A DNA stretch of 64,000 nucleotides from the NCBI RefSeq assembly GCF_006345805.1, contig NC_042997.1:92814001-92878000 (forward strand). Reading direction: 5' to 3'. This stretch comes from Octopus sinensis (lineage: Eukaryota). A program made the position numbers and the translations under genes. This document shows, piece by piece, positions 5,757-55,363 of this stretch. A model generated the notes under the pieces. The model saw only the letters and a program-made list of their open reading frames with translations. It made no database searches and was not told the origin of the DNA. The stretch's first letter is position 1, and each line of letters begins with the position of its first letter.

Positions 5757-5827
5757 CCTTCCCTGAGAACATGGTATTCAAAATATTCAACAGCTGCCTT
5801 AATACCAATAAATATGTGTTTCATCAG
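5757..5827 (-). CDS. NHE-like exon (LMKHIFIGIKAAVEYFEYHVLRE), juxtamembrane CHP-binding-like helix
   Basis: Long T-rich acceptor (ttttgctgtattttattag), gtaagt donor, 71 nt. Matches NHE1 [23 protein letters not shown]. Confidence 0.82.
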
Positions 5828-15191: not shown

Positions 15192-18100
15192 TTCAGCAAC
15201 ACAGATGACTTTGAGATTCATGAAAATTTTCAACCAGGAAACAAAATTTGGAGCTAAAAAACTTGCAGTAATCCAATATTTGTAAAGCAGTAAAAACAAC
15301 AGACTAATGCATTTAGTTAGCAAGACTGTATCTTAATATTCTGCTGAAATATTTGAAACTTTCTAGAACATTCAACTTAACAATAATAGTCTGATACTGA
15401 CTGGCACATGACCTTTACAATACACATACAATAGAAAATAATTATAGCTGCCCACTTACATTAACATGGAATTAATTCCACAACTGATTAAACAAATAAG
15501 GGGAAAAACAAAATATGAACAATATGTATATATACATAATGTATGTGTGTGTGTGTGTGTGTGTATCTCTCTATCTATCTATCTATATGTATAGGTGCAC
15601 AAGGGGCTTTGTGGTAAGAAGCTTGCTTCCCAACCACATGGTTCGAGGATCAGTCTCACTGTATGGCACCTTGGGCAAGTGTCTTCTACTATAGCCTCAG
15701 GCCGACCAAAGCCTTGTGAGTGGATTTGGTAGATGGAAACTGAAAGAATTCAGGGTACAAGTAGGGGTTCTCCAAGGACTGGTACTCAGCCTCCTTGTTC
15801 ATCATAATCCTTCAAGCAATAACAGAGGAATTTAAGACAGGCTGCCCCTGGGAACTTCTCTATGTTGATGACCTTGCTCTTATAGAGAAGTTCCAGATAT
15901 GAAAGCAAGGTCTAGAATTGAAAGGTCAGAGTTAACCTAGCAAAAACCAAAGTCTTAGGAAGTAGGAAGGCAGTCAAATCACAAATCCCTTCAGGTAGAT
16001 GGCCCTGCTTGATCTGTAGAAAAGGCGTAGGTAGAAACTCCATAAAATGCACCCGATGTAAGCTTTGGACACATAAAAGATGCAGCAATATCAGAGGAAG
16101 GTTAACAGGGCAACTAGCTTTTATATGTGGAAGATGCACAGATATAATAAATGCTGAAAATGTGCAGAAAATAGACAAGGGGGCAAACTAGAGGTAGTAC
16201 ATAGCTTTAGCAGTGGGGGTTGATGCTCTGAGAGTGTAGCTGTGAGAATAAGATTAGGCTGGGCAAAGTTCAGAGAGCTCCTACCTCTGCTAGCAACAAA
16301 GGGTCTCTCTCTCAGAGTGAAAGGCAGATTGTATGATGCCTGTGTGCGAACAGCTATGCTACATGGCAGTGTAACATGGGCTGTGGCATGCGAGGACATG
16401 AAAGAAATGAAGCTAGTATTCTTTGCTGGATGTGCAATGTCAGTGTGTATGTTTGACAGAGTGTAAGCATCTTGAGAGAAAAGTTAGGCATAAGAGATAT
16501 CAGATTTGGCATAAGAGAGACAACAGTGCTGGTATGGTCACATGATGCATATGGACGAGGATAGCTGTGTAAAGAAGTACTAATCTCTGACTGTGGAGGG
16601 AACCTGTGGTAGAAGTAGACCCAGGAAGACATGGGACGAAGTGGTGAAGCATGATCTTTGAACTTTGAGCCTCACAGAGACAATGACTAGTGACCAAGAC
16701 ATTTGGCAATATGTTGTGCTTGAGAAAACACATCAAGCCAAGTTAGATTGCAGTCATGGCCAATGCTGGTGTTACGTAACTGGCACCTGTCGGTGACACG
16801 TAAAGGGCACTTTTCAAGCATTGGGCCTCAAGGAGACAAAGTGGCTGAGTTCCTATCGAGTGTTGGGCCTCACAGAGGTAAAGTGGCTGAGTTGCTTTTG
16901 AGCATTGGGCTTCATAGAAGCGAAGTAGCTGAGTTCCTTTCAAGCATTGGGCCACATAAAGGTAATGACTAAGACCTTTGGCATTATGTCGTGCTTGAGA
17001 TACAGACCCATCAAGCTAAGTTAAATCACAGTTGTGACAGATACTGGTGTTTCACAAATGGCATCCATGCCATTGGCATGTATAAGCACCAATTACACTC
17101 TTGGAATGGTTGGCATTAAGAAGGGCATCCAGCTGTAGAAATCATGCCAAATCATCCTGGGCAGTCCAGGAGACCATATCTCACTCATACCTCGATTCCT
17201 GACATGGATTCCATAGCTGGATGCCCTTCATATCATTAACTACTTACTTGAGGCAAGTAGTTGAGATGACAATGGTAAAATGATGGCTAGCCATACAGTA
17301 AACAGAGGGGTGTAACAGGTACCAATAGACCACAAACAATTCCTTGTTACTCAGGTACATGATGGGAGAGAGAGAAAGAATAAGGTGATAAAGATGGTAG
17401 AAGTTGAAACTGAATATGGATAAATCTAAAGTTCTCTTTCCTTACAGAAATGACATGATGCAAGAATAGAAGAGGGGATGATACAGAATAAGAGGCTACT
17501 GAATAGGCAAGAAGTGCAGCAAATAAAAACCTAGAAACCCCCCCACCCAAAAGGGGGGGGTGGAGAACTAAATTCAAATATTTATGACATATCCCATGCC
17601 AGCATAAAACTCAGATGCTAAAAGATGATGCTGATGATGGTGGTCCCAGCCTCTGTCACTACCAAAATTTTACTGTTTCACCATGCTTGAATGAGTGGTC
17701 TAATTCTTAGCATCATGTATCACTTATCATAATGGCCCTTTACCAGTTCCTTCATATGAGATGCAACATCATAAATCAGTCTTCTTCACTTTGTACCAAA
17801 TATTCCTCTTACACAGGTCCTATTCACTGAGTGCTTGTCACTTCCTTACGCAACAGTCATGGCTTATACTTCTGTTGAATCTTTGTGTGTAGACACTCTT
17901 TCTCACACACTCTCCACTTTCAGCACCTTCTCATAGTATCACTTCCCTGCCTCTTTCTTTTTTACTGTTTTTAAAAGCAAATGTGTCATTATTCTCTAAA
18001 AACTTCTCAATAGTAAACTGTCTAGCTATAGGGAACACTTCTCACTTCTGATCCATACATCACAGAATATGTGCAAACCTCTTTTTCCCAGTATATACCT

Positions 18101-21100
18101 GAAGTATAACTTCTCTTCTAGCTATCTGGTATTTTTCTCTGCTGCCACATTCTTCCAGTCTTTCCAGGCCTGTCTCCCAGCTTTTATAGACTTAATGACT
18201 ATTACACCACCAGCAAGTTGCTATGCATCCAGATGAAGCATTGTAGCAGCCACAAATGTAATCCTCAGCCCTCAGTATGTTTTATTGTACAAAATCCCAA
18301 TTCTCCTGTATGCTGTAAGCCTCTGTTGCCTGACACTGGGTATCATATCATGCTGAAGCAAGCATGCATTACATATATATGAGAAGGCATATGGCTTAGT
18401 GGTTAAGATGTTGCACTCATGATTGCGAGATTGTGGGCTTGATTCCCAGACAGGACATTTCGTTGTGTTCTTGAGTAAAACTCAACTTCATTTCATGTTG
18501 CTCTGCAATCATTTCATCATCTGACATGTGGCACCTCTTGCACCTGTACAGGTAATGTTGATTTGATGGAGTAAGTGAGCTTATGTGTACACAAACATTT
18601 GATCACTATAAACAAATCATATGTTTGGTTGTTTGGCAAGAAATTGCTGAACCTTCTCACATCATCTAACAATGGGAGAGTCCATAATATAAGAACACAA
18701 GTTGCTAACTTTTACCTGTTTTTCAAGTAAGGGATTTCGTCATTTCACAAGTCACTGAAAGTATGATGTGAGCAGCAAATTTGTTGACAGAAGTGACAAC
18801 AACAACACTACTTGTGGTGGGTAACTTACACAGAACACAACAGTAAACACACCCACACACAAGTTCTTTCAGCTTCCATCAACCAAATTCACTAACAAGC
18901 TTTACCAACATATTCAACTAACTAGTTGCATAATCTGTTAAATAATTGTTTTTTTTAACCATCAACTTGAAAGAAAAATATTTCAAGCTCAGAATAAATT
19001 TTAGTAGTTGATAGACTAACCATTAGCTTCTACAATTTTTTGCTAACAAGAAACAAATCTATTTACTTTGGGAGCAAAAAATTCTGGAGTCTCAGAACTG
19101 ATAAATTCTTTGAAGGTATTTGAAGACTTCATTTTGCAGTAAGTTATTTATCATAGATATATAAAGTATAAAGATCTTTCCCAATAGGGCTGGTTTCTCG
19201 GTTTTTGTGGCACATATACACCCTTCTGAATGAGATGCCAGTTCTTTGTGGGATTATTCATTTTTGCCAGCTGAGTGGACTGAAGTTTTTTGCTCAAGGA
19301 CACAACACATCACCTGGTCCAGGAACCGAAACCAAATCTTACGATCATGTGTCTAACACCCTAACCACTAAGTTATTTATCAAGATGCTTGGAAAACAAT
19401 TAAGGTAGAGTTTTGCAGCACAGGTCATAAAAATTTAAGTTAACTGTGAGATATGTGATTCAGGGTTGACAGAGAGAAATTAGTAATTTCTGATTGGACA
19501 ATGCTGGACATAAATGTCGCCGTTATTGGTACATTCTGTCAATTTTTAGGTAACTATTTCCTGCTGTAATGGTTTTGCCAGTATTTAAAAAATAGGAACA
19601 CATGATTCTCCTTACCAACCACAAAACAGTGATTGTAATCTTCTTTTGATGTAGCTTCAGTTCCAAAAACTGCTTAGGTACCTGACCTCAAACCAGCTAG
19701 TACATGGAACATAGTTGGTTATCATATAAAGTTAACGCATAAATACACACACATATATATATATACACACAAACACATATACATATATGTATATATATAT
19801 ATATACACACACATACGCAAAAAAATATACATACACACACATTTTTCAATACACATTACAAAAATAAAAGTTCCTGGATAATGAACAATGCATATACAGT
19901 AAGCAAGTACATCAGAAGCAGAACATGAAATCTACTGAATATTAGGAATGGATGCCAATAAAATTTTGAGTCTTTCAACATATGAAAAAGAAAAAAATTT
20001 CCTACTCACATGGTTTTCAGTTTTTTCTACTGATATGATATCTGATTTAGGTCTCTTAATACTGTTTAACATGGGCTTAAAAGACAAACTCTGCAACAAA
20101 TACATTATAAAGTGTCAGAGAAATTGAAACATGCTGTGAAATATGCTATTTTGAATTAGAAAAATTTAATTACATTTTGAAAATTAAAAGTGTCTTTCTA
20201 AAATAATCCAAGATGCAGAAAAGACATAAGGATATTGACCTTATAGAAGCATTAACTTCTATTTACAAATGGAGGATTAGAATTTTACGGTTAATTTCAT
20301 TATGTTAAATGCAATGGTTCATTTCATAATGTGGAAGTAATAGCAAACGAAATCCAAAGACAAGTAATCATACCAAAACCACAAACTTTAATTATTCACT
20401 TTCATTGTTACATTCATATACTGTATAGAATTTTTAATAATTTTAATTGGCTGTTTTTTATGAAGCTGATTACACTGTCTGTACATTGATAAAATCCTAT
20501 AAGGTGTTTATGCCTAGATCATTTTCTCCTATATTTACACTGATTTCAGAACATGGTTTAGCAGCCTTGTCAGGTAACCATCTCCACAGGTTTTAGACAG
20601 TTATATTGACCCCTGTACTTTTGGCAGGTGCTTATTTTATCTATGTCAAGGAATGAAATGCAAAGTTCAGCTTGGCATAAAAATATAGAGCTAATATAGC
20701 CTGGTTCTTATTCTACCAGGCTCTATTAGTCTAACTGCTAAGTTATGAAGACACAAACAAATCAACATTGGTTGTCAGGTATTGAAGGGGACAAACACAA
20801 AGACACTTGTTCAAGATGCCACACTGAGGGATTGAATCCAAAACAACATGGTCACAAAGTGAGCTTCTTAACCATACTGCCATATAGAGACAAAGAGTAT
20901 TGGCAATGTATATGTACTGAATTTAATAATCTACTCAGTGGACTGGGACTCAATCTACCTCAACAAGAACTCTTAGCACTCAAAATTTTTTTATAAAACA
21001 CAATATAATAAATTCTTTACAGGAATATAAAGAAAAAAATTATAAAAGCCAGAAAGGAAATAATATATATATATATTTACCAATATAAAAGTTACAAAGA

Positions 21101-24100
21101 TTGTAAACGTCAAGATGGAAGGAATCATCATTTGTGATTGAGTTAAGTCAGTTTGGCTAAAAAACAGAACCAGCCCAAAAGTATAGAGGCCTCGGAGTAT
21201 ACTGTAGAACATAATAAACTGTTCAAATTTACTCAGTTTGATGGTAGTGTCTCGAGTTGGCCACCACACAAAATTGATCCCACCTAGAAAAATAAAAAGA
21301 AAACAAAAAAATTAGTAAAATTAATGTATACTACATAAATAATCTAACAGCACAGTCAGTTCAATTTTTTTACCAATGTTCTCCCATCTTCCCATATGTG
21401 TGTGTGTGTGTGTGTTTATATATGATGGACTCCCGGTCTAAGATGATGTGTGAGTGTTCAGCTTTTTTGCTGAATGACCCTGCACAAAAGATTTGTTTAT
21501 AGTGATCAAATTCATGTGCTTTACATTAGCACACTCCTGCCATCAACGATGTCCGAACAGATGCACTATGTGCCACATGTCAGGTGTCAAAGAGATTGCA
21601 ATGCACCACCTGGTCTAGGAATTGAAACCACGATCTCATGATCATATATATGTGTGTATAAACTACTAGCAACACACCACAAGCATATAACTTGGAGCGA
21701 AAACGAAATGTAAATCTTATAACTTTTGAAGCATGTTACATCACTTGATGAGGATCCCTGCACTGTGCATTGCATCTGATGTCATTATATCATCTCAAAC
21801 CCACTAGGGAGTAGTGCAGAAGGAAGCTGAAATGATTGTTATGCTAAATAAAGCATCTAGTTACACTCTGACTTCCATATCAATCATTTAAAATATATAT
21901 ATATATGAGACGCCATGATAGATCGTTAGCCACTACACACATTTTTTTTCTCTCCTTGTTTTTTCTGTGTCCCTTTCTGTAGAAGAGCGTAGGCTCGAAA
22001 CATAAAAGACTTTTTCTATTCCTGAGCGTTATACAAATACATCTGTTTGTTTTGTATACCACCTGTCTTCGTCTTTTGTTTTTTCGTAAACTCTCCCTAG
22101 ATATATATATAGATATAGAAATAGGGGGAGAATTCACAAAAAAACAAAAGACGAAGATAGGTGGTGTAGACAACAAACAAATGTATTAGTTTAACGCTTG
22201 GGAAGTGAAAAAGTCTTTAATGTTTCGAGCCTACGCTCTTCCACAGAAAGAAACAAGGAGAGAAAATAAAGAATGTGTAGTGGCCAGCGATCTATCATGG
22301 CAAATATATAAATATATATATATAAAAGATGAAATATCTTTTTCAAAAATCTAATATTGTTGGTCATTGGGTACAAAATCCTTTATAGGTAAAGAAGGGC
22401 TCAGAACAATTGACTAAGCTCAAATATAGTGTATTTTAACATGTATAAGGAACCCCCTAATTTTGGGGGCTGAAAATATGGAAAAAAGTTTTGTAAGGGA
22501 TTATAATACTATTCATGCATAAGAAACTCCCATATTTTTTAAACTTAATTTTTGACAAAAAAGGGTTCCTTATACATGTTAAAATATGGTATTATTTGGA
22601 CTTATTTTATGCATTTAACAGTGATGAAAACCAAAATAAATCTTAAAAGGATTTGAACTAGGAAATGTGGAATCTAACTAGATAATATAAAGCATTTAAT
22701 CCAGCTCACTTTTCTGTACAAATTGGAAGGTAGCCTTTTTTAGTTTATATCAGAAACTTACTTCAACTAACAGCAACAAAATTGATAAAACAGGCATTAT
22801 TAACCCTTTAGCATTCAGATTATTCTGTCAAATATAATATTTATTCATCCATATTGTTTTAAGCTAATCATGCATTTTTTCGTAGCTTTAAGATTTCGAT
22901 GATGTTATCACCTGTTTTTAGATTGACATTATAGGTTGGTGTGAGATACCAAATCTGGGCAGTTTTAACAGAAAACAGGTAGATTATTTGGGCCGGATAT
23001 GGCCGGTTTAAACACTAAAGGGTTAAGTTATTGCCCCATGTCAGTGATAGCAATGATTTAAACCTACCAAGAGAAGTGTAGTTGATGCAGAGAAACAGAC
23101 AGAAAAACACAATAATGCTGTTCCAACAATGAGCCTGTGTATCAACTGACAGTAGAAATAATAGAACCAGAGCCTCACAAACACAAGACACAGTCTTCAG
23201 TGACAAAGAGACAGCTCCTTTGGATGAGGTAAGTGATCTTCTTGAAAGATGAGCTTGAACATACTGTTTGATGCTGATTCCACAGAAGATTACTCTGAAA
23301 TGGAAAAGAAAATATGTTGTTCAATTTAGAAATTAGTAAAAAGAAATACAAATAACAAAAGATAACAAAAGCTAAGAGACATTCATAGTTAATATTAGGT
23401 TGACACTCAAAGAAGAAAAAAAGTTTAGTGTCATAGACTTTTGTTGTATACAAGTCCAAGAGACCCTGGGAAAAGAAAGAAGGGAAGGAGCTTAAAAAAA
23501 AGAGATCCAGGGAAAAAATGCATAGTTCATGCATTAAGTTTATGCTATATAAAATTATGCATATGTGTATGTGTGTCATAAATATCTCACAGCATATCTG
23601 AGCTCCAATTTTGTATTGGACTTACAATACAACTTATTTATTCTCAGTGAGCTAAGGTGCTATTAACACACTCGAGTTTTGTCTAAAAGCAAGTCAGTAC
23701 GCAGCATGGTTCAGTCAGGTTTCTAAGCTGAAAATAAGTGCTGCTTCCACTCTATAGTTGAATGAGTATTAATAAGTAGAGCATCCATCTGTGAAAATAA
23801 TTGCTTTAATAATTTACATGCAAATTTTACAAAAATATTTTACTTGTGCTGGTAGGGAAAAATTAACTATAATATAAGAAAAAAAAATAACTATAATATA
23901 ATAAAAGAAAGCAAATAAAAAGCAATTATCTTCCAGCCAAGGCTAATTAAAAAGAATTATCATAATTCAGAAAAAGAAACATTGTTTTTCTCCAATTTTT
24001 AATATGAATGTGATTTAATATATGACCATAAAATGAATATTTTAAAATCTATTTATAAATACAAGATATTTCCATAGAAACAAGCTAAAACAAAGGAAGT

Positions 24101-27100
24101 TCATCACAATAAGTTTAATTTTATCATTACTGTTTGTCAATGACATAACTAATCAAATTCTGATTGCATACTATTGTCTTTGAAGATGAGTGATACACTG
24201 GATAATATAGTTCTCAATACACAATGCCCAAAAGGACAAGATAGTCCTGGCCGGAATGGCCATTTCCTTGGACTCAGTATCCATTAGTCTCATCTATATA
24301 CTAACTAAAGATGATTGACATTGATGAATGTCTCTGATCAAGTAATTAATTCACTTATGAGTTAATAATATACGAGTTAAAGTAGAAGCCATCAGTAATA
24401 TTGTTAAATAAGGCAACTTTTGAGTACTAGTTAGATGCGATCAGTGTAGTAACTGAATCTCATTCAAGTTTCTTGACAAACTACAAAATAGGAACCATAA
24501 GAGGTTGGATCTGAATTTCAGGACAGAGTGGGCAAGAATACAAACAAAGCAACAGGGATTTAACAAGAACAATAGAAAGAAAGGCTAACAGTAAGCTAGT
24601 ATAAATAATTGTGTGTGGGTATGCAAGGTATATCCTGTATACATTCAGATTGACAATATTGAAAGAGAAAGAGGATGTGTATATTGCATGACTGTAAATG
24701 CAGAAATGGCAGTGGCTATAATCACTCTGATTGAGATCTCTATTTTGAGTAATGTTGTTTATTTGTGTCCGTGTCACTAGAAATAATTTTGAAAGTGGGA
24801 AGAAAATTGTTGCATGTATATTTGAGTGAAAAGCAAGTGGATAGGTACAAGTAGGAAGGTTGTTGCAATATATTTATGCAGAGTAGATGTTTTAGTCATG
24901 TGAGGACCAATGTTGTACGTGACCTTTGTCTGCATGCCTATCCAGAGTGGCAAGATTGATATGGACAATACCCAGCTTGTCTGTTTCCAGACAATTGGTC
25001 CAAACGTTTGCAAGTGAACTTTGCTAAAAGGCGCTTAAAGACTACCAAATAATACAGCTATTTAAAAATAAAACAATTAAAGCAAAATATTGGGAAATAG
25101 TACTAGGCCTTAAGGTCATATCAGAGAGGGAGAAGAAGTAAAACGTTTATACTAGAAAAATTATGCATGTTTTTTTTTCAAAAATAATTTATAAATGCAA
25201 ACTAAACTGCAGCATACTTCAATAAATGCTTTATATGGAAATAAAAGCTGTTAACTTAATTGCACTTCTATTTTTAAATTAGAATCAACAACAGCTTCAT
25301 CAGTTTTGCATTTTTGCCTAAGTTGTATTGATTACATAAGCTCATAATACACAAGTCTCAACCAGGCATCATGTCTTTCTTGAGGTTCCATGTTCTGATA
25401 TTTATCCTAGTTACTGCATTCCACCTAATACTAATTTTCATCTCTCTCTCTCTCTCTCTCTCATCTTAATATGCATCCCTAATCTATTTTTATTATACCC
25501 AAACCAGTGGTTTTGATTTTCAGTAGCTTGTATCTAATCTGTCTCATTCAAGACATTTCTAATAGAAATCATAAGTTATAAATAATCATTGTAGTCATGT
25601 TAGTTGTTTTACAACTATTTTTCTGAGCTACTAATACTGAAATTTTGCTCAGATTGCTTTTGTATAAGTCAACATTTTGCTAGGAGACAATATTAATCTA
25701 AGTGTTCTCCCTATAACTATCTCTTTAAATGTGAAGTGCAGATGCAAGCTAGTATCAACTATTAGGATATTTTTTTCAAGTGAAGTAGAAGTTTTACAAC
25801 TGGATAAGCTTCTTCCTCTCAACTACTAATCACTCAAGTACAAAGTCAAATGATGCAATGCAATAAACAATCCGGAACTAGATAAATTCATCTAAACAGG
25901 GTTATGCTAATTAAAAATAATAACCTAATAATTGCAGCCAATGAAAATGAATTTATAATGTTTTGGTATTATCAAAGGTTCAAAATATATTGTTTTAACC
26001 ATGTCATATTTTATCAACAAAGCAGCTGCCCTACTGATTAATAATCTCAGTTGGAAATTCTACAAGCCTAATATAGGCACAGATATGGCTGTGTGGTAAG
26101 AAGTTTGCATCCCAACCACATGATTCCAGGTTGAGTCCCACTGCATGGAACCTTGGGCAAGTGTCTTCTACTATAGTCCCAGGCTGACCAAAGCCTTGTG
26201 AGTGGATTTGGTAGCTAGAAACTGTGCCACCCACCCAATACCACTTGGTAACCAGTGCTGGTGTGTTTATGTCCCTGTAACTTATTGGTTCAGCAAAAGG
26301 AACTGGTAGCATAAGTACCAGGCTGATAAAAACTAAGTACTGGGGTCGATACATTCAACCCAAAATTCTTCAATGTGGTGCCCCAACATGGCCACAGTCT
26401 AATGACTTAAGCAAGTAAAAGATACAAGATAGCTTGCATTGGAATGAAAACACGGGGTATTTCCTGAATAGCATTGAATCCTTACAAGAAGCTAATGTTC
26501 TATTCATCATCATCATCATCATCATCATCATTTAACGTCCGCTTTCCATGCTAGCATGGGTTGGACGGTTCAACTGGGGTCTGGGGAGCCCGAAGGCTGC
26601 ACCAGGCCAGTCAGATCTGGCAGTGTTTCTACAGCTGGATGCCCTTCCTAACGCCAACCACTCTGAGAGTGTAGTGGGTGATTTTATGTGCCACCGACAC
26701 AGGTGCCAGACGAGGCTGGAGAACGGCCACGCTCGGATGGTGTTTTTTATGTGCCACTGACACAGGTGCCAGACGAGGCTGGCAGACGGCCACGATCGGA
26801 TGGTGTTTGTTACGTGCCCACAGCACGGAGGCCAGTCGATGCAGTACTGGCTACGGCCACATTCGGATGGTTTTCTTGTGTGCCACCGGCACTGGTACCA
26901 CAAAGATACAAATTCCATTGATGTTCATCTATTTTGATTTGTTTTGATTTTCACTTGCCTCAACAGGTCTTCACAAGTGTCACAAGAAGGAAGGTATGCA
27001 CAGGTGGACTGACTACGTCCCAGGTAGGGGCCACGGGTTTACTAAGAATATACTACCCAATATAAAAAAAAATTTTAAAGTGCCTATTTGACTGATACGA

Positions 27101-30100
27101 CTAAAGAACCTTCCAATCTCTTCTCTAGTGTAAAGTTTGACTCACTATTTCATTGTACTATAAAGGCTTCCAATGCTCATACATCACTCTGTACATTCAC
27201 CATTTATTCACTCAAATATCCATAGTACCTTCTTATATTCCAGATTTTATACTAAATATTTTGCCAAATCTTGCCCAGAACAATACTTTTTTTCCAGGAA
27301 CTCTCTGTGCCTATATATTCTTCCAACCACTATATTACTTCAGACTGAATGTTCACACCCAACCATCCAAGCCATCTCAATGAAGAGGTGAGAAGACAGA
27401 AACCTATCGGTACTATCCCTTCATTTATAAACTAAAAATAAAAATAAAAGCAAAATAAAACTTACTAAGCAGATTGAGTAAAAACAAACTAAGAAATAAC
27501 AAACTGTGCATACGTGCAACGTTTTCATATGCGAATGTGTGTGTTCATATGTGAATGTATAAAAATGCAGCTAACATGTTTAGGCTATTGGGATTATAGC
27601 AAATAAAATAATTTTATGAATTGATTTATGGAACAAAATTAAATGCAGATGAAATATAAAAGTAACCTAGTTAGTAAAAAAAATAATCAATACAGAATAT
27701 GACCAATATAAAATTCAGAATGAAAATACAGATAAAAATGAAATATGTATGTCACTGGAAGATGCGTAGGTTTAGAAAATAGTGTTTTATATAGAGTTTT
27801 GAGATCTGGTGATTATATTATTTTATAAATTTTTCTTTCCTTGAAATTTGTTGACAGTACATGAATATATACTAGATAACAAAAAAAAAAAAAAAATTAG
27901 ACAAATTCAATATGAAAAGCTTACTTGAGAAATAAAAATACAAGGTATTTTGATTGCCATGATGGAAAACAACCATTAGAACCTGAACAATGGTCCCAGA
28001 GCAAAAGAGAACAAACTGACAACGTAGCAAATATATATTAGAAATTTTAATGAAATTTACTGATAAGATAATTTATTTTTTGTTTGTAGTGCAGTAGAAC
28101 TGTATGCGATGGGTCAGACCAAAGTGACAAGATAAAATAATCCAAAAGTGATGTCATAGGGTAAAAATTAGAAAGGATGCCAAGTAACTAGATCAATTCA
28201 TTATGTATTACTAATAACAGCTGTTGAATTTTTTCTAAATTTTTAGCTATGAATCTTATCACCTCATTAAAAAAAACAACAAACGTTTCAAACCAACAAG
28301 AAAGCTTCTATGTAATTCATCTGTGCAGCTCAGTATAAAAACAGTCAAATATGCTGTTGTTTAGGCTTAGGCCAGCATTGATCAAAGTCATTCCAGTTAT
28401 GACTATCCTGAGCTTTGAGACTATATTTACCCAGTATATCTAGGACAACATTATCTAAAGTGTCATATTTTCCATTTTGAATGGAAGGAAGTGATCTGAT
28501 GGTAGTTTAGCTATTATTTCTAGCTGCTGAAATTTTCATGTAGATCAACATGTATCTTTGAAGATTTTTAAGAATACTTAAGTAAAATTATGGTCAATTC
28601 TCAGTTATTAGGGCCTATAAATGAACCACTGTCATTGTGAATGGGATACATGAATGACATCTATGCCACAGGTAATTTGTCCTTGAAATTTGTGAAATAT
28701 GTCTCATGAAGGTGATGACAAATGACCAAGTCTTCTGACAATTTGCTGTGCTTGAGAAGACACATCAAGCTAGGTGAAATTGTGATCATGGTCAGTGCCA
28801 GTGAGACATTAAAGGCACCAGTGCCAGTGACAGGTAAAAGGCCCTCATGCCGGTGACATGTAAAAAACACCCAGTACACTCTGTATACCATGCCAGCATA
28901 GAGAACAGATGTTAAATGATGATGATGATGATAAACAATCCTTTTTAACACAGACACAAGACCAGAAATTTGTGAAATAGGAGAGGTGGTAGTCAATTGA
29001 AATCAACCTAGTACCTGACTGGTACTTTATCAAGCTCTGGAAGAATGAAAGACAAAGTCAGCTTTAGCAGGATTTAAAAGTCAGAACATGACATGAAGTG
29101 GCTTAACTAAATACTGCAAGGAACTTTAGCCAAAGTTGTAACAATTCTGTGAATCCACCACAATAAAAATCATCATCATAATTTAACGCCCACTCATCTA
29201 TGCTTGTAAGAGTTAGACAGAATTTGTTGAGGCAGATCTTCTGCAGCTGGATGCTCTTCCGATTGCCAACCCTCACCTGTGTCCAAGCAAGATAATAATT
29301 TCCCCATGGCTAGACATGTTTTTTATGGAAGACTGGAAACGAATACCCTCACTTGTATGACAATGATATCCACTTACAACCATCACACGGTGTCTAAACA
29401 CGGTTACACATAAACAAATGTATATGCATATACATGTATATATATATATATATGTGTGTGTGTGCGTGTATGATGAGCTTCTTTCAGTGTTTGTCTACCA
29501 AATCCATTCACAAGGCTTTAGATGGCCCAAGGTGCTGCACAGTGGGACTGAACACAAGACCACATGGTTGGTTAATTAAAATTCCATATTCATTAAGCTA
29601 TTAACTTATATCACTTTGACACTGGTATGATTTGAGTGCCTTCCATCAACAGTTTAACTATGAATAGAAGGCACTCAAATGATATCAGTATGATGCTATA
29701 AAATGTAACAAGTGATTGCCAAGAAGATATGACTGCATTGTGTTTTCAAAAATAATACTGTGATAAGATAAATAATTGAATTAATCACAAGAACTGCAAC
29801 AGAATATGTTCTACATATCTTCAACTTCGAAACTGCTGTTAACAATAACAAGTGCTGAGTTTGGGATATCAAATCAAATTCCTTATTTATATTTCTTTAG
29901 CAAGTGAATCTGATTCCAAATTATGTGTAGAAACTCAAAGAATTTATCTTTTATCGTTTACTTGTTTCAATCATTTGACTGCTGCCATGCTGGGGTACTG
30001 CCTCGAAGAGTTTTAGTGAAACAAATTGACCCCGGGACATAAACACACCAACACCAGTTGTCAAGTGACGGTGTTAGACAATCACAAAGACACATGCACA

Positions 30101-33100
30101 CATAGATATATACATGCATATATATATATATATATATATATATAAACACATACACACATATATGATGGGTCTTTCAGTTTCTCTCCATCAAATCCACTCA
30201 CAAGGCTTTGGTTGACCCAAGACTATAGTAAAAAGCACTTGCCCAAGGTATCATACAGTAAGACTGAACCCGAAACCATGTGGTTGGGAACCAAGCTTCT
30301 TGCTACATAGTCATGATGTGTCAATAGTATCACAATAGAATTTATATTAGCTATTTAAAACCTATATTGTTATATTCAGTCTTTATTTGCTAAGAAGTTC
30401 TTAATATGATAAGAGGATTGCTTATTTTTTCTGTGCTTCTTAATCTTTCCTTATTCACACCCTCTCACACTTTCCCAAAAGCTAACAATCTCTTTTCAAC
30501 ATATCATATTTTTAATTATTCATAACAACAGAGAAAAGTACCCATGACTTTTGTGAATATTTCAAGACTAATGCAATTGATGCTTAATTTGAACTGCTAT
30601 TAGCTGATGATTACAAGAAGGAATGAAAAAAGGGAGAAAAAAGTAAATGTATGGGAAGGGAATTCTATTGAGCTGCATTTCTGGGGAAGAATGACTGGGC
30701 ATATTGCTTAGTGTAGAATCTAGGGTGAGAAATAGTAGAAATAGCTTGAGGAGGAGAGACAACTGATCTTGATGTAATCTTAGAAAGTCAAACTGTAGAA
30801 GATTAGAGGACACCATAGTGATGTTAGAAGTAGCAGAGTGAAGAAGCTCTTGAGTCAGTGGTTGTAGAGCACTGGTAAGAGAATTGCTGCCTATTAACCA
30901 AATAGACTTCAATGTGGTGATCTAGAATATTTATTTGTGTAGTAGCAGCACCTTCCTAGATATCTAAACAATATTCCAATGTTTGTCTTACTTAAGTACT
31001 GTAGAGCAGTTGAGCAGGATTGAGGTAGTGTTTGCCTCTAAATAAGAATCCCAGTCTTTTGAATGCAGTTTTAGCAATGACATATATTGGAAGCTGCTTA
31101 TAGAGATCATTTGGGACAAAGCCAATAAGCTGATAATGTTAAGCAAATAAAGAGTTTGGAATCTATTCATTTTTATAACAACAATTAGTTGACAACATTA
31201 TTAGTGATAATAATAAACAGCTTTCATGATATGTATGTGAAATCAGTATGAAAAATCATCAGAGGTCATTACCGTTTGGTTACAATAGTTTCAAGTGTAT
31301 GAGAATGTTAAAAGTAAGGACCTGAGAACTAATATCATAACTATGATTTAATATAATTTCATCCACTCTTATAGATTCTGCTTAAAGCCAAGATCATCCC
31401 CCCCACCCCACGGGCATTCAAACACTGCAAAAATGACAATGAAAACACTTATTTACATACTTACCCTAAAATTGCTGGCAGTTGGAACAGTTGCAGACTG
31501 AAATAGATGAGGCAAACCAGAACGGCAATGACTGCAAATTCTAAGAAGTAAATAGTTGACGGTCTGCAGACATTGCCAACAATGGATGCTAAGCAGCTAA
31601 GTAAAAGACCAGTAGCTGTTCCTTCAACTCCAACAGCTAGCAGACACTCAACAATGTTTCCTAAAGAGCTTGGTCTCAGGACTGTGGTGTATGTATTACC
31701 CATGAAATGGTAAAGAATCTGCAAGAAAAAAAAAACATTGTTTACTATTTTAGCTAATCATATTAGAAAATAAAGCAACACTGCTGGCATATTCTTAATT
31801 AAAGATCTTTCAAAGAAAATATATTATTGAGTAAAAGCCACATACCACTTACATACTTCAATATATATAAAAAAAAAAATGAAAACAATTATAGAACAAT
31901 AATGAAATAATAATATATGCTGAAGTAAAGAAAGTAGTATTCACAATACATCAGACAGCTTATAAGAATTTGGTTAAATGAATTCAAATTGTTATATTTG
32001 GGTCACAAATTAAATTTCCATAGTGATTAGCTATACATTACATGATCGCATTAGTCTTAATCTGGTGCTTAAATTCTACAATTACAGGCGGTTTTTTTTT
32101 TAATATATTGATCTTTTTCTAGTTTTAACCTTTTAAATATTCAGGTAAGTCAATAAATTCAAATTTTTATTCTCATATACAATTCAAAATAACATAAATG
32201 GAATCAAATATTACTAAATTGAAAATCAAAGACATTAATTCTACTCCATTATATTCAATTGCTTGTTATGATTCATGTGATGTAAATAAAATTGAACAGA
32301 TCTCATTATTACACTGATGCATTCATCATCATCATCATAATATTTCTAAATGTATTTCTATATTTTATTTTTATAAGGAAATAATTAATAAGGTATAATA
32401 TATATATATAAGTTGTGTAAGAGTGGATGTCTGATGCGCCATGAGTGTAAAGGTCACAGTTACTCATGAAATGCGATTTCAGAAATAAATAATGGCTGAA
32501 CTTAAGAGTTGTCGACATTAATATAATCTGTAGTGCTTCAAAACATTAAAATATATGGTGAGATGGGCTGACCATTTTGAAATTACTGATGTTAAACAAT
32601 TGACATAGGTAAAATAACTGTTATCAACACAATTGCACTTCAGGAATATGTTGCTATGAGGTTAACAGATATCTGTGCGACTGTTTCTCTGTGTACTTAT
32701 ATCCTCTATTTGAGCACTCAGAAAGCATACCTATTAATTTGAGTCATCCTGATGAAAACTCCTCATATCCTCTCTTTCCCTCTCTCTCTATATATATAAA
32801 TACACACACACACACACACACACAAGAAGAGAGAGAGACAGATATACACAGAGAAACAGTCGCACAGATATCTGTTAACCTCATAGCAACATATTCCTAA
32901 AGTGCAATTGTGTTGATAACAGTTATTTACCTATGTCAATAGTTTAACATCAGTAATTTCAAAATGGTCAGCCCATCTCACCATATATTTTAATGTTTTG
33001 AAGCACTACAGATTATATTAATGTCGACAACTCTTAAGTTCAGCCATTATTTATTTCTGAAATCGCATTTCATGAGTAACTGTGACCTTTACACTCATGG

Positions 33101-35174
33101 CGCATCAGACATCCACTCTTCAACCTTACACAACTTTTACAGTTGTAGTCTACTTCCCCATTCCCTCATCTCCTGCTTTCCATACAATCTTGCAAACAAC
33201 CCACTTACCTGCTTCTGTTCACCATGTGCATTGAGGGGCCACTTGGGCAACACATTGCCACTATTTATCTCTTTACAGCCCTACTTACCATTTCTTTCCT
33301 TCTAGCAAATGCGAGTAGCCATACAACACCTCTACAAGAATCTGTTCTAACTGCTAAACCCCAACCCCCATGGCCACCACTACCTACCAGGAATCTGTAG
33401 ACTTGCGAGCTGCATGATGACATGAAAAAAAAAGCACCAAGTACATGCTGTAAAGTAGTTGGCATTAAGAAGGACATCCAACTATAAAAACCATGCCAAA
33501 GCAGACACTGGAGCACAATGCAGTCCTTGGACCTACTCAGACCCTTTCAAACCATCAAGCCCATGCCAGTATGGAACATGTGCATTAAATAATGATAATG
33601 ATGATGACACAGTGACCATGACAATAATTTGAAAGGTAATCAAGAGTTACTTAAGCTGGTGTCAGAGCAGTAGCGTAGCTAATAGGGGAGTAACCATTCC
33701 CCCACCCTTGTGAGCACATTTTTCAAACTGGCACCTTTTCAACAATTTAAAAAAATATTGTATGTCAGTATAATAGTAACACGCTTGTTACGAAAACAAA
33801 GAGCTATGGATTCGAGATCCACACATACAAGAACCCAACTTTTTTCCATCGAGGGCTAATATGCTCCAATATTTAGACTATTTTCTTTAGTCATTGTATG
33901 GTGATTGCTTATAAGCTTTAAGCCTATAAAATATTATTATTATTATTCACAGAATTATAAAAAATTGATGCTGCTTAAGAAAAACCATCACAGAAAGGCA
34001 CAATTTTTGTTAACTCTTTAGTTAACTATATCAGCTGTTTCATATATAATGACATTGTTACTGAATCATGAAATTAATGAATGTTGAATACAATTACATC
34101 TAATATTACTAGTGAAATTTGTTGTAAAAATTGTTTGGTATGTATCACGGTGCCTTTCTTTTATATGTGCTTGCTCTCACTAACATTAGATCCTGGCTAT
34201 ATCTCTGCGTCAGAGTATCAAGTCTACGCTCTGTAGTAAAAAAGTTATTTTGTTCTAACACTTGGATAAATCTAATATTAAATATAACAACATAAAATAA
34301 AATTTCAACTTTTTTTAATGAAAAAGATGAAGCAATACATAGCATTAATAGTTATCAAAAAATGTTGATATAGGTGCAAGAGGGCTATGTGGTAAGAAGT
34401 CTGCTTCCCAACCACATGATTCCAGGTTCAGTCCGACTGTGTGGCACCTTGGGCATGTATCTTCTACTATAGCCTTGGGCTGTCCAAAGCCTTGTGACTG
34501 GATTTGTAGATGGAAACTGAAAGAAGTCCTATGTATGTATGTATGTATGTATGTATGTATGTACGTATGTATGTATGCATGCATGTATTTTTGTATCTGT
34601 CTCCTCACCATTGCTTGACAACCAATATTGATGTTTTTATGTCCCCATAACTTAGCAGTTCAACAAAAGACACTGATAGTATAAATAATAGGCTTCCACA
34701 GAAAAAGTCCTGGGGTTGATTTGTACGACTAAAGGTGATGCTCCAGCATGGCTGCAGTCAAATGACTGAAACAAGTAAATGAATAAAAATATTGCAAGAA
34801 TTCATCATTATCATTTAACATCCACTTTTCCATCTTTACATGGGTTGGATGGAGTTTAGTTGAGGCAGATTTTTCCATGGTTTGATCCCTTTCCTGTTGC
34901 CAACCCTCACCTATTTCCAAGCAAGGCAATATTTCTCCATGGGTAAGTATGTTTACGTAGAATACTGAAAATGAATGACACTGCTTGTATGACAATGACA
35001 GTCATTTGCAACTATCATGCAATGTCAAGACAAGGAGACACACACACACACACATATCTCAACAAGCCGAAACTGTAATGATGATTGGAAATTTGACTGA
35101 TGACTAGAAAGCCACGAATGTTCTGTTGTGGTTTTCCTGTCCATATGTTTTCATTGTTGTCTGTTACGTTCTTT

Positions 35175-35224
<50 letters not shown>

Positions 35225-35860
35225 GATGGGCTTCTTTCAGATTTTGTCAATCAAATCCATTCACAAGGCTTTGGTTGGCCTGGGGATAACATAGAAGGCA
35301 CTTGTGCAAAGTGCCATGCAGTGGGACTGAACCTGGAACCATGTGGTTGGGGAAGCAGACTCTTTACCACCCAGCCATACCTGTGCCTACATATCATATA
35401 CACACATATGCAAGCATACACATGAAATATTGTATTATACTTACCAAGGAAATTGTATCAATTAAGAGGGATTCTCCAAATACAATGAAGTCAGGAATGG
35501 TGTTGAAATGAATATCTTTGAAGGCAGCAAGTAATGGTAAAGGATCGAGTGGAAAAATAAAACAGTTGAGTAGAAAGCAGTACAAGAGTCTGACTTTGCA
35601 ACGTAAAATATGGTAGAGGCCAACAGAAAGTAGTAATATGCAGATCAGTTTGAACAGATGTATGGGCCCTGGCTTAGCTATCAATGGGACCAAAATCAAA
35701 GTCAAGATAGCAAAAATTGCAGCAAAGTCTGGAGCGAGATTTGCAGATGTCAATGAGGGCCAAGAGATGAAGTAAGGCATATAAGAAAGAAGAGTCAGAG
35801 TTGTAATTGCCAAAAACAGAGGGATTACGGTGGATTTCCTCCATTTTAGTGTGTCCAAAT
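5757..35860 (-). CDS. Divergent SLC9A/NHE-type Na+/H+ exchanger-like gene, 6 confident coding exons (5' and 3' ends uncertain)
   Basis: Exons 35860-35445, 31718-31465, 23294-23068, 21283-21081, 20090-20010 and 5827-5757 all have AG/GT ends and compatible phases (0,2,1,0,0). They join into a stop-free ~417-codon frame with NHE motifs in order: DP..L.AF.DIH, VFGESLLID..LILYH, KQYVQAH, CEALV, HCWN, EQFI..LRG, KP, KHIFIGI. Confidence 0.9.
7553..8170 (-). mobile_element. Internally deleted RTE derivative (linker joined to RT C-terminus and 3' UTR)
   Basis: ARGEADKKKFANVLHHEDQRLEVFHFARQ abuts directly on the GKPRKT..DKVVKHDL region and the 3' UTR with gatgacgatgatga tail. Confidence 0.8.
9081..9452 (+). 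mobile_element. RTE 3' UTR copy with three 62-66 bp tandem units
   Basis: g(a/g)cacgt(t)aaaagc unit starts at 9082, 9148, 9213 and 9275, then acactcacggagtggttggcgttaggaagggcatccagctgtagaa...cccatgctggcatggaaaacggatgttaaacgatgatg. Confidence 0.88.
9660..9843 (+). mobile_element. RTE 3' end copy
   Basis: Same 3' UTR core and gatgat tail as 9081. Confidence 0.85.
10291..10727 (-). mobile_element. Two tandem Meta-domain-like SINE copies
   Basis: ggtacttattttatcaaccctgaaaagatgaaaggcaaagtcgacc-like core twice (about 10291-10497 and 10518-10727). Confidence 0.8.
10950..11220 (+). mobile_element. RTE 3' end copy
   Basis: Same core (ggagtggttggtgttaggaagggcatccagctgtagaaacactgcc). Confidence 0.85.
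14355..14640. repeat. GA-rich and (GCA/GTA)n low-complexity tract
   Basis: (GA)n then agcagcagaagtagtagtag-type trinucleotide runs with a duplicated ~40-45 bp block. Confidence 0.85.
15590..15748 (+). mobile_element. tRNA-derived CORE-like SINE head
   Basis: gtggtaagaagcttgcttcccaaccacatggttcgaggatcagtctcactgtatggcaccttgggcaagtgtcttctactatagcc. Confidence 0.85.
15749..17160 (+). mobile_element. 5'-truncated RTE-type LINE (RT C-terminal half plus 3' UTR)
   Basis: QG.VLS.LLFII...KTGCPWELLYVDDL, IRLGWAKFRELLPLL, KGRLYDACVRTAMLHGS, W.GHMMHMDED, GRSRPRKTW. Ends in the gaagggcatccagctgtagaa 3' UTR. Confidence 0.9.
16812..16980 (+). repeat. 42-bp minisatellite (4 units) in RTE 3' region
   Basis: Units start at 16812, 16854, 16896 and 16938 (ttcaagcattgggcctca...aagtggctgagttcc). 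Confidence 0.85.
17700..18350 (-). mobile_element. Degraded RTE LINE fragment (linker region)
   Basis: Minus frames: YQIARRE, EKRFAHIL..DQ..EVFPIARQF, YEKVLKVE, GP. Many disablements. Confidence 0.7.
18383..18690 (+). mobile_element. tRNA-derived SINE (fourth tail type)
   Basis: ggcatatggcttagtggttaagatgttgcactc head. A related minus copy lies at about 21395-21685. Confidence 0.7.
18990..19700 (-). mobile_element. Old mariner transposase fragment, interrupted by a SINE
   Basis: Minus frames give PKQFLELKLHQKKITITVLW, FLNTGKTITA..IDRMYQ..CPALSN, FSKHL and NTFKEFISSETPEF..QKIVEANG, collinear with the mariner C-terminal half. Confidence 0.75.
19185..19375 (-). mobile_element. tRNA-derived SINE inserted in mariner relic
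   Basis: Reverse complement has A/B-box-like head (ttagtggttagggtgttagacacatgatcgtaagatttggtttcggttcctgg) similar to the copies at 47455 and 61030. Confidence 0.65.
20010..20090 (-). CDS. NHE-like exon (SLSFKPMLNSIKRPKSDIISVEKTENH)
   Basis: tttgttgcag acceptor, gtgagt donor, 81 nt, phase 0-0. Positionally matches GMTIRPLVDLL...EEIHTQ. Confidence 0.8.
21081..21283 (-). CDS. NHE-like exon (KLSKFEQFIMFYSILRG...FVTFIL)
   Basis: ttttattttctag-type acceptor, gtaaat donor, 203 nt (phase 1 to 0). Matches NHE1 KLTPKDQFIIAYGGLRG...FFTVFVQ. Confidence 0.9.
21395..21685 (-). mobile_element. tRNA-derived SINE, same family as 18383
   Basis: Shared gatttgtttatagtgatcaaat and gtgccacatgtcag segments. Confidence 0.65.
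21912..22301. repeat. Inverted pair of Penelope-like terminal repeats with hammerhead-like cores
   Basis: Arms about 21912-22097 and 22123-22301. Each has (t/c)cttt-CTGT(A/G)GA-A-gagc-gtag-gctc-GAAAC-at(a/t)-aaaga. Confidence 0.6.
22429..22589. mobile_element. Tc1/mariner-superfamily (Tc2/pogo-like) MITE
   Basis: Perfect 24-bp TIR tattttaacatgtataaggaaccc (22432-22455 and 22563-22586). Subfamily assignment is an inference. Confidence 0.7.
22804..23022 (+). mobile_element. piggyBac-type MITE family A
   Basis: TTAA|ccctttagcatt ... aacactaaaggg|TTAA, intact TTAA on both sides. Confidence 0.88.
23068..23294 (-). CDS. NHE-like exon (VIFCGISIKQYVQAH...HCWN...TSLG)
   Basis: ttttccatttcag acceptor, gtaggt donor, 227 nt (phase 2 to 1). 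Matches NHE1 LIASGVVMRPYVEANIS...SETLIFIFLG...HHWNWTF...RVLG. Confidence 0.9.
24481..25020 (-). mobile_element. Highly degraded CR1/L2-like RT remnant
   Basis: VWTNCLETDKLGIVHINLATLD and QNYF..RTQINN resemble RT domains 3-4. The alignment is weak. Confidence 0.4.
26075..26420 (+). mobile_element. tRNA-derived CORE-like SINE, tail type A
   Basis: Same head as 15590 plus tail ...ccccaacatggccacagtctaatgac...gcaagtaaaagat. Confidence 0.85.
26505..27030 (-). mobile_element. RTE 3' end copy with tandem units
   Basis: Reverse complement of the 9081-type UTR. (CAT)n tail at 26505-26532. Confidence 0.88.
28665..28932 (+). mobile_element. RTE 3' end copy (degraded)
   Basis: gctgtgcttgagaagacacatcaagc and catgccagcatagagaacagatgttaaatgatgatg. 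Confidence 0.7.
28940..29160 (-). mobile_element. Meta-domain-like SINE (degraded)
   Basis: ggtactttatcaagctctggaagaatgaaagacaaagtcagc core. Confidence 0.65.
29175..29570 (-). mobile_element. tRNA-derived SINE with RTE-like tail (type B)
   Basis: Head remnant at 29490-29570, internal TA/TG microsatellite, RTE-type tail. Confidence 0.75.
29960..30312 (-). mobile_element. tRNA-derived CORE-like SINE, tail type A
   Basis: Reverse complement of the 26075/62585 family with internal (TA)n. Confidence 0.85.
31465..31718 (-). CDS. NHE-like exon (ILYHF...LFQLPAILG)
   Basis: ttttcttgcag acceptor, gtaagt donor, 254 nt (phase 0 to 2). Matches NHE1 VLYHLF...AELFHLSGIMA. Confidence 0.9.
32419..33120. 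repeat. Near-perfect 277-bp inverted repeat with 149-bp spacer
   Basis: 32419-32695 is the reverse complement of 32845-33120 with 2 substitutions and 1 single-base indel. Confidence 0.95.
33420..33606 (+). mobile_element. RTE 3' end copy (degraded)
   Basis: ggcattaagaaggacatccaactat...cccatgccagtatgg...gatgatgac. Confidence 0.7.
34370..34790 (+). mobile_element. tRNA-derived CORE-like SINE, tail type A
   Basis: Head, (TATG)n, tail ending gactgaaacaagtaaatgaataaa. Confidence 0.85.
34800..35390 (-). mobile_element. tRNA-derived SINE with RTE-like tail (type B)
   Basis: Head at 35225-35385, (TA)n/(CA)n, RTE-type tail at 34800-35040. Confidence 0.8.
35445..35860 (-). CDS. NHE-like exon (N-terminal TM region to GESLLxD motif)
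   Basis: tttttctcttctag acceptor, gtaagt donor, 416 nt. Encodes ...FPLDPLPLLAAFKDIHFNTIPDFIVFGESLLIDTISL, matching NHE1 [37 protein letters not shown]. Confidence 0.92.
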
Positions 35861-55080: not shown

Positions 55081-55109
55081 GATACTATATAAATCTAAAG
55101 ACACTTATT

Positions 55110-55363
55110 CTATTGGTCTTCTTTTCTGAACCACTAAGTTATAAGGACGTAAATACACTAGCGTCGGTTGTCAAGTGATGGTGGGGGACGAACACGGACA
55201 CACAAACATATATACGATGGGCTTCTTTCAGTTTCCATCTACCAAATCCACTCACAAGTCTTTGGTTGGCCTGAGGCTATAGTAGAAGACACTCACCAAA
55301 GGTCCCATGCAGTAGGACTGAACCCAGAACCATGTGGTTGGTTAGCACAGCCACTCCTGCGCC
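55110..55363 (-). mobile_element. tRNA-derived SINE, tail type A
   Basis: ccatctaccaaatccactcacaag...ctatagtagaagacact...aaccatgtggttgg. Confidence 0.8.

Follow-up and report, generated by a model that had tools for sequence, protein, structure and literature searches.

What does a Na+/H+ exchanger (NHE) do once key residues of its ion site have been replaced? A gene in a 64,000-nucleotide stretch of the Octopus sinensis genome (assembly GCF_006345805.1, contig NC_042997.1, positions 92,814,001 to 92,878,000; hereafter the window) raises this question. An earlier note, made from the letters of this DNA alone, had read the gene as possibly a non-canonical or non-transporting NHE. We identified it as LOC115216422, whose product XP_029641618.1 (P0002, 1202 amino acids) is annotated as "uncharacterized protein LOC115216422 isoform X2". 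The protein is a coleoid-specific, non-canonical SLC9A; its gene is real, expressed and under strong purifying selection. Judged by analogy with mutated exchangers, it probably no longer performs ordinary Na+/H+ exchange. The core of the earlier reading is thus supported by the mapping of residues in alignments, by further losses in orthologues, by canonical molluscan relatives that are intact at the same positions and, by analogy, by mutagenesis of other CPA1 proteins.

We established the gene structure as follows. The peptides quoted in the earlier note all lie on the minus strand of the window, with the codons that it gave. Splicing exons A to D yields an open frame of 366 codons, and an exhaustive HMMER search found 366/366 residues to be identical to XP_029641618.1. 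This search was the informative one; word-indexed homology searches returned very few matches and missed known orthologues, and their silence is not evidence of absence. When XP_029641618.1 was mapped back on the window by tblastn, two more exons, E and F, were found. The range proposed earlier, 21081-35560, therefore takes in four exons (A to D), but the gene runs on at 20090-20010 and 5827-5757. All six exons have canonical splice sites and consistent phases. Together they encode amino acids 121-537, the first ~120 and the last ~665 residues being outside the window. The exons, with the transmembrane helices (TM) that they cover, are:

35445..35860, minus strand: exon A (416 nt), amino acids 121-258, about TM2-TM6; acceptor TTCTAG|, donor |GTAAGT; 100% match to XP_029641618.1; carries F222 (NHE1 S235), D225-P226 (D238-P239, unwound TM5), E249-S250 (E262-S263) and I253-D254 (the ND motif, here ID).
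31465..31718, minus strand: exon B (254 nt), amino acids 259-343, end of TM6 to TM8; carries Q334 (NHE1 E346); acceptor CTTGCAG|, donor |GTAAGT.
23068..23294, minus strand: exon C (227 nt), amino acids 343-419, TM9-TM11; carries E383 (E391) and T416 (R425) in INYTSLG; placed by splice sites, phase and a 100% tblastn match.
21081..21283, minus strand: exon D (203 nt), amino acids 419-486, TM12-TM13; carries S446-I447-L-R449-G (GGLRG changed to SILRG) and I485-L486; 100% tblastn match.
20010..20090, minus strand: exon E (81 nt), amino acids 487-513; carries S487 (NHE1 G496) and the juxtamembrane linker; AG/GT boundaries, translation SLSFKPMLNSIKRPKSDIISVEKTENH matching XP_029641618.1.
5757..5827, minus strand: exon F (71 nt), amino acids 514-537, LMKHIFIGIKAAVEYFEYHVLREG; counterpart of the NHE1 CHP-binding helix (~520-544); 100% tblastn match.

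The exon F segment was aligned by phmmer to residues 519-544 of NHE1. In this alignment HLMKHIFIGIKAAVEYFEYH preserves the hydrophobic pattern of the CHP-binding helix, so that the juxtamembrane amphipathic helix typical of SLC9A1-5 and NHE3-like proteins is present by sequence. An open reading frame (ORF) just upstream of exon A (36031-35948, minus strand, ESIVFLEQVFNYIFLLLVSVMRLD) was considered as an NHE TM3 exon and rejected. Its resemblance to NHE TM3 FLQSDVFFLFLLPPIILD is weak (E=46) and its frame is broken in another Octopus species by 2-, 3- and 4-nt indels, pointing to a chance match or a relic; the true TM3 equivalent was placed by MAFFT inside exon A.

Next, we compared the ion site with that of NHE1. 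Residue equivalence was taken from MAFFT alignments with canonical NHEs and, independently, from a phmmer alignment whose target was full-length human NHE1 in its native numbering (PDB 23xi_A; E=7e-30). The latter is ungapped across each motif and agrees with MAFFT. The numbering of the NHE1 reference sequence reproduces literature positions and matches the PDB 23xi_A alignment. The positions concerned, all on the minus strand, are:

35555-35553, minus strand: TTT, NHE1 S235 replaced by F222.
35546-35544, minus strand: GAT, D238 kept as D225.
35474-35472, minus strand: GAA, E262 kept as E249.
35462-35460, minus strand: ATT, N266 of the ND motif replaced by I253.
35459-35457, minus strand: GAT, D267 kept as D254.
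31493-31491, minus strand: CAA, E346 replaced by Q334.
23176-23174, minus strand: GAG, E391 kept as E383.
23077-23075, minus strand: ACT, R425, the salt-bridge partner of E262 in NHE1, replaced by T416.
21203-21198, minus strand: G455/G456 replaced by S446/I447.
21194-21192, minus strand: CGA, R458 kept as R449.
20090-20088, minus strand: the Ser codon of I485/L486/S487, which replace V494/Q495/G496; it is the first codon of exon E and lies just outside the range of the earlier note.

Both alignments, together with the codons, bear out the substitutions that had been read from the sequence (N266I, R425T, E346Q, S235F, GG455/456 to SI and VQG to ILS), and both agree that D238, E262, D267, E391 and R458 are kept. 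The earlier note had allowed that a proper alignment might put Asn and Arg back at their canonical places; the alignments keep Ile at N266 and Thr at R425. Nor could A-to-I editing restore Asn, Arg or Glu in octopus, as it had also argued, since ATT would become GTT (Val), ACT would become GCT (Ala), and CAA would become CGA (Arg) or CAG (Gln). The alignment to NHE1 revealed losses beyond those already listed: E131 to L, F162 to T, P168 to L and E247 to K. In addition, ~23 residues of the TM3-TM4 region are missing in octopus, among them LDAGYF with D172. Hence, of the signatures by which a CPA1 exchanger is recognized, the ND motif (positions 6-7 of the CPA motif) reads I253-D254 in Octopus, and the pair of a TM6 Glu with a TM11 Arg is broken: the Glu is kept as E249, and the Arg is Thr in 6/6 cephalopod sequences. 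The dipole-compensating residues of the two unwound helices, D238 in TM5 and R458 in TM12, are present in Octopus as D225 and R449.

How unusual this pattern is was assessed on 153 aligned NHE sequences, comprising representatives at 50% identity and named relatives. Non-gap departures at D238, N266, D267 and R425 occur only in the octopus protein and its cephalopod orthologues, plus a single R-to-H change in a truncated fragment; the remaining sequences have N266 in 148/148, D267 in 149/149 and R425 in 144/145 cases. The octopus pattern is therefore far beyond chance.

The divergence extends over the whole membrane domain. Of 103 columns that are invariant in canonical NHEs (human NHE1, amphioxus, midge, two gastropods and scallop), octopus keeps 41 and cuttlefish 33, and 62/103 are thus changed in octopus. 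Canonical membrane domains are 51-72% identical to one another across phyla, whereas the cephalopod proteins are 24-28% identical to them. The Na_H_Exchanger profile (PF00999) scores 55.1 bits on the octopus protein (cut-off 26.2) and matches over profile positions 83-374 only, compared with 278-297 bits for canonical relatives. The match is significant and places the octopus protein in CPA1/SLC9A by Pfam; the cuttlefish orthologue (P0165) gave no PF00999 match at E<=0.01. The cytoplasmic tail is normally the fast-evolving part of NHEs. By contrast, octopus and cuttlefish are 33% identical in the membrane domain and 63% in the tail, which is the reverse of the conservation pattern in normal NHEs. 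Conservation between the two in the core and in the dimerization domain (42% vs 31%, with approximate TM boundaries) does not discriminate a scaffold from a transporter.

Extreme divergence of the membrane domain, the failure of Pfam on the cuttlefish orthologue and an O. bimaculoides gene model that is split in two could all be signs of a decaying pseudogene, or of an artefact of alignment or annotation. We consider this explanation scarcely credible. Genomic contigs from a second Octopus species (SRR118693xx) served for comparison with the window. Exon A is 93% identical at the nucleotide level, with 0 indels and 17 synonymous against 10 non-synonymous differences (ratio of non-synonymous to synonymous rates, dN/dS, 0.17), and exon B is 95.7% identical, with 0 indels and 9 synonymous against 2 non-synonymous differences (dN/dS 0.07). 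The flanking introns, by contrast, are 83-87% identical, those around exon B 83-86%, and carry many indels. For the two exons combined, dN/dS is 0.14 (synonymous vs non-synonymous differences, Fisher p=6e-9). Purifying selection of this strength is incompatible with a dying gene. Moreover, reading frames are intact in six species, and ten cuttlefish RNA-seq runs, including two from Sepia esculenta larvae, yielded assemblies of the full-length spliced mRNA. The pseudogene was therefore rejected on dN/dS, indel-free exons and full-length mRNAs; the canonical splice sites of all six exons and the agreement of two independent alignment methods likewise speak against an artefact.

The gene was found, by sequence, in coleoid cephalopods, both octopods and cuttlefish. 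We recovered orthologues from O. vulgaris, O. bimaculoides, Argonauta hians (84% identical) and Acanthosepion (Sepia) pharaonis, as well as ~4-kb cuttlefish transcript contigs that include Sepia esculenta. In a European Nucleotide Archive contig of a third decapodiform species (P0188), only tail exons were within reach. A residue table of six cephalopod sequences against five canonical NHEs separated shared from lineage-specific changes. Common to all cephalopod orthologues are R425T, the loss of GG455/456 (SI or SA before LRG), a replaced E346 (octopods have Q and cuttlefish H) and the losses in TM2-TM3, with E131, the D172 region, F162 and P168 gone throughout; E262, S263, E391 and R458 are kept in every one. 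The ND position, by contrast, differs between lineages. Octopods (Octopus and Argonauta) have I-D there, and Argonauta has an additional D238N. In cuttlefish, D238N and P239T are joined by S (or N)-N in place of ND, which removes D267 itself. Conservation across cephalopods, which the earlier note had suggested as a check, thus holds for R425T and for the GG and E346 losses but not for N266I, which is confined to octopods. In the simplest history, the Arg and the outer-site residues would have been lost in the coleoid ancestor, and the remaining ion-site residues would then have decayed lineage by lineage.

Within lineages there is little change. Two Sepia species differ at 7/409 membrane-domain and 10/732 tail positions. 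Between Octopus and Argonauta, TM6, TM7, TM9 and TM10 are 100% identical and TM8 and TM12 are 96% identical, the range for TM6-TM12 being 88-100% (again with approximate TM boundaries). Two observations on the cuttlefish transcripts concern the ND position. The ten near-identical mRNA contigs show one A/G difference, at coding-sequence position 761 of one contig (L012) vs the others (L003-L011), in the N266-equivalent codon. This codon is AAC (Asn) in SRR5319792 (L012) and AGC (Ser) in the nine other runs, including the adjacent SRR5319791; the difference reflects either polymorphism or A-to-I recoding. The codon at the D267 position, AAT (Asn), is editable in principle to GAT (Asp), and reads AAT in 10/10 assemblies. 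We also noted that public annotation of the gene is inconsistent: the O. sinensis protein is called "uncharacterized protein", that of S. pharaonis (P0004) "SLC9A3", and in O. bimaculoides the gene is divided between two models, one of 534 aa named "Na(+)/H(+) exchanger beta" and one covering the tail alone and called "uncharacterized protein" (P0158/P0153). The labels "SLC9A3" and "exchanger beta" suggest an activity for which the sequence offers no support, so that studies of cephalopod acid-base balance could count the protein as a working exchanger.

What these changes would mean for transport can be gauged from published work on other CPA1 proteins. In the human NHE1-CHP1 structure the cation-binding groups are D267, S263 and the carbonyl of V237, and transport is abolished in the D267N mutant. 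A buried salt bridge links E262 to R425. E346 and F162 contact cariporide, and for the outward state a contact of both with Na+ has been proposed (PMC8190280). Virtually all CPA1s carry Glu at motif position 5 and Arg at position 8 (Masrati et al., PMC6181914). AtNHX1 (R353L) is inactive, and AtNHX1 (R353K) failed growth complementation though vacuolar pH was intermediate; MjNhaP1 (N160A) is also inactive, whereas N-to-D is tolerated, AtNHX1 (N184D) being active (PMC10421325). In sea-urchin SpSLC9C1, R399A, the equivalent of a change at R425, abolishes exchange (PMC10620092). Since the equivalent single changes are disabling in the CPA1s tested, each cephalopod orthologue would, by this analogy, carry at least two individually disabling changes. 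The premise of the earlier note, that the ND motif and the E262-R425 pair are conserved in electroneutral CPA1, stands for the Glu and the Arg but is too broad for ND, to which exceptions are known (TS in SLC9C1 and IC in SLC9C2; PMC10049371).

An ordinary Na+/H+ exchanger, with its substitutions compensated elsewhere, is nevertheless conceivable. Octopus keeps D267, the one residue described as key for binding both Na+ and H+, along with S263 and D238; AtNHX1 does not strictly require the ND Asn, as N184D shows; and the gene is under strong purifying selection. We regard this explanation as improbable, however. Loss of the R425 equivalent inactivates two tested CPA1s and N-to-Ala inactivates MjNhaP1, the cuttlefish orthologue has the very D267N change that kills NHE1, 62 of the 103 canonical-invariant columns are changed in octopus, and none of the ~150 other NHE representatives tolerates these changes.

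We then considered where the protein came from and what fold it is likely to retain. The tail motifs IHH[IL], LPWK and [FA]P[SA]W are common to the cephalopod protein, insect "NHE3" and molluscan NHE3-like proteins, and the best tail matches among the sequences collected are the NHE3-like proteins of Gigantopelta, Biomphalaria and Mizuhopecten (E 1e-13 to 1e-22). The tail is thus homologous to those of the plasma-membrane SLC9A1-5/invertebrate NHE3-like subfamily, and the octopus gene, on this sequence evidence, appears to descend from a molluscan "NHE3-like" plasma-membrane SLC9A exchanger. As the molluscan NHE3-like relatives with the same tail keep a fully canonical ion site, the erosion is specific to cephalopods. 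A tail block of ~110 residues (~1085-1202 of XP_029641618.1, outside the window) is near-invariant between octopus and cuttlefish (EPLTSPHATNTNIGDKVCSTESMHRL.PPTHHIIIPLTPGNTNESISDLESAAA...RDRRHSTSLTEEQ.YEEDCLQRVQNWLDNVEPG) and has no Pfam domain match. The cephalopod proteins end in ...LEETIV, the ETIV being a putative PDZ-type ligand. An AlphaFold2 (AF2) model built on a 141-sequence alignment reached a pLDDT of 78.4 and a pTM of 0.76, with helix breaks at FPLD in TM5 and RGLY in TM12 (a 13-sequence alignment gave pLDDT 44 and was unusable). The top Foldseek matches of the model are NHE1-CHP1 and NHE3-CHP1 (E ~1e-12, TM-score 0.71). The 13-TM NHE fold with its two broken crossing helices is therefore predicted to be kept.

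Of the roles open to such a protein, we favour, tentatively, that of a non-exchanging scaffold or regulator as the most likely. Canonical, amiloride-type 1:1 Na+/H+ exchange would have been lost through the dismantled ion-translocation site. The membrane domain of this "pseudo-exchanger" would serve for targeting, for dimerization with itself or with active NHEs, and for CHP binding, while the conserved tail with its PDZ-type end may be the output, assembling or regulating partner proteins. Some observations weigh against a scaffold. The centre of the membrane domain, TM6-TM12, is near-identical between Octopus and Argonauta, and such near-identity of the octopod membrane core would seem to exceed the needs of a mere anchor and fits a membrane domain with a specific function. 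Octopus also retains D267, S263, D238, E262, E391 and R458, and a cation or proton site could persist. Furthermore, the AF2 model is driven by an alignment mostly of canonical NHEs.

A second explanation, somewhat less probable than a scaffold but a serious contender, is a neofunctionalized transporter, a channel-like leak or an ion/pH sensor, in which E262, no longer paired, makes a different site, in octopods together with D267, and substrate, stoichiometry or coupling is altered. It would account for the retention of E262, S263, E391 and R458 in all cephalopod orthologues while R425T is common to all, and for a burst of change between lineages followed by strong constraint (TM6-TM12 88-100% identical in Octopus and Argonauta, dN/dS 0.07-0.17). 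The predicted persistence of the broken-helix crossover also fits, and there is a debated precedent in mammalian SLC9C1 and SLC9C2, which have no ND motif and for which "alternative transport activities" are suspected (PMC10049371). Octopods and cuttlefish, however, disagree at the candidate site (ID vs S/N-N at the ND position, D vs N at 238, Q vs H at 346); the clade as a whole shares no single new site. Also missing is most of the acidic funnel (E131, D172 and E346), and an R-to-K change at the R425 equivalent already failed in AtNHX1 growth complementation, its intermediate vacuolar pH notwithstanding. One specific version, which we rate as less likely than not, is that R425T in the coleoid ancestor freed the buried E262 and that a new site for an ion or a proton, centred on E262, arose in what had been an electroneutral Na+/H+ exchanger. 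In octopods D267 would contribute to this site, and in cuttlefish E262 would be on its own; the product would be a transporter with another substrate or stoichiometry, or else a leak or sensor gated by protons.

Nearly all electroneutral CPA1 exchangers are held to carry the ND motif and the Glu-Arg pair, and to our knowledge the only animal exceptions under discussion are SLC9C1 and SLC9C2, mammalian sperm proteins that are hard to express. What is new here is an SLC9A-type (NHE3-like) protein without the ND and Glu-Arg signatures, yet under purifying selection in octopods and cuttlefish; we found no paper that mentions the locus or its accession numbers. It offers a tractable natural case in which to ask what role an NHE fold unable to exchange may take up (scaffold, regulator of active NHEs or sensor) and which core residues are indispensable. 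Should the E262 site exist, evolution would here have rewired the core of a CPA1 protein, providing a natural experiment. The functional names on the Sepia and O. bimaculoides models, in turn, may mislead work on acid-base physiology and call for caution.

The window as a whole is AT-rich (about 34% GC), has many microsatellites and is clearly eukaryotic in character; ARAGORN found no tRNA gene in it. Outside the exons it holds repeats and fragments that resemble mobile elements. The other features that we noted are:

46387-47173, plus strand: mariner-type transposase remnant in the large intron upstream of exon A, two adjacent ORFs split by a stop; Pfam Transposase_1 (PF01359) E=1.5e-9, HDNAKPH motif in the second ORF.
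35251-35396, 34398-34506, 30188-30290, 26074-26210, 15523-15728, 55243-55339 and 62578-62705, both orientations: dispersed repeat of ~100-200 bp in at least 7 copies, 69-74% identical.
9082-9241, 26677-26839 and 52229-52389: three short, relatively GC-rich tandem arrays with 63-66-bp units in 2.2-2.6 copies, which may be one repeat family.
54783-55178, plus strand: ORF containing ...NGKVPGMDGLGAEIYKY..., reminiscent of the N-terminal region of reverse transcriptases of long interspersed nuclear elements (LINEs); no Pfam match at E<=0.01.

The dispersed repeat yields recurring ORF fragments (e.g. ...HSQGFGQPG.IVEDTCPR.HAVGLNLE.CGW); the copy that immediately follows exon A has a counterpart in the other Octopus species compared. 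The tandem arrays create spurious ORFs of >120 aa on both strands.

Lastly, we compared the octopus protein with known systems. The cephalopod "NHE3" described in squid and octopus gills and ionocytes (Hu et al. 2013, PMC3844404; PMC5357659) was considered as a product of this gene and rejected, being a different, canonical gene of the crab-NHE type. The epitope of the antibody used there, IYRVRKVGYDEQFIMSY, agrees at 14/17 positions with two crab-type proteins (P0096 and P0111) and does not match the TRDTTIKLSKFEQFIMFY of the octopus protein. A length of ~1200 aa and the loss of ND had also raised the suspicion of an SLC9C-type sperm exchanger. This identity was rejected because Pfam finds only PF00999, with no voltage-sensing (VSD) or cyclic-nucleotide-binding (CNBD) domain. 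It is further disfavoured by a tail that is largely hydrophilic and homologous to NHE3-like tails, and by PDB sequence matches that favour NHE1 and NHE3. A likeness remains, in that the ND motif is replaced in mammalian sperm SLC9C1 (NHE10, TS) and SLC9C2 (NHE11, IC), whose Na+/H+ exchange is itself under debate (PMC10049371). NHE11, however, keeps the equivalents of E262 and R425, whereas the cephalopod proteins lose the Arg.

Among solved structures, the best sequence matches are human NHE1 (SLC9A1) and NHE3 (SLC9A3) with CHP1 (PDB 7DSV, 7DSW, 7DSX and 7X2U; E 2e-30 and 2e-26). These complexes are also the best structural matches (TM-score ~0.7), and the octopus model has both the broken TM5/TM12 crossover and a segment like the CHP helix. 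The membrane domain, by contrast, is ~23-27% identical to theirs, with replacements at the ion-site residues and throughout much of the acidic funnel. Closest are the invertebrate NHE3-like SLC9A proteins, which we take to be of the Drosophila Nhe2 type. Those of Gigantopelta aegis (XP_041375066.1), Mizuhopecten yessoensis (XP_021372404.1) and Biomphalaria glabrata (XP_055892057.1), together with insect NHE3 isoforms, belong to the same subfamily and share its tail motifs and predicted 13-TM fold. The molluscan proteins end in -T/S-x-L, which is PDZ-ligand-like, and the cephalopod ones in -T-I-V, whereas the insect isoforms do not end so. These relatives keep E131, F162, PP167/168, D172, D238, N266, D267, E346, R425 and GG455/456 and score 278-297 bits against PF00999. 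The octopus protein, unlike them, scores 55 bits and is without E346, the Asn of ND and the Arg at R425, among other residues.

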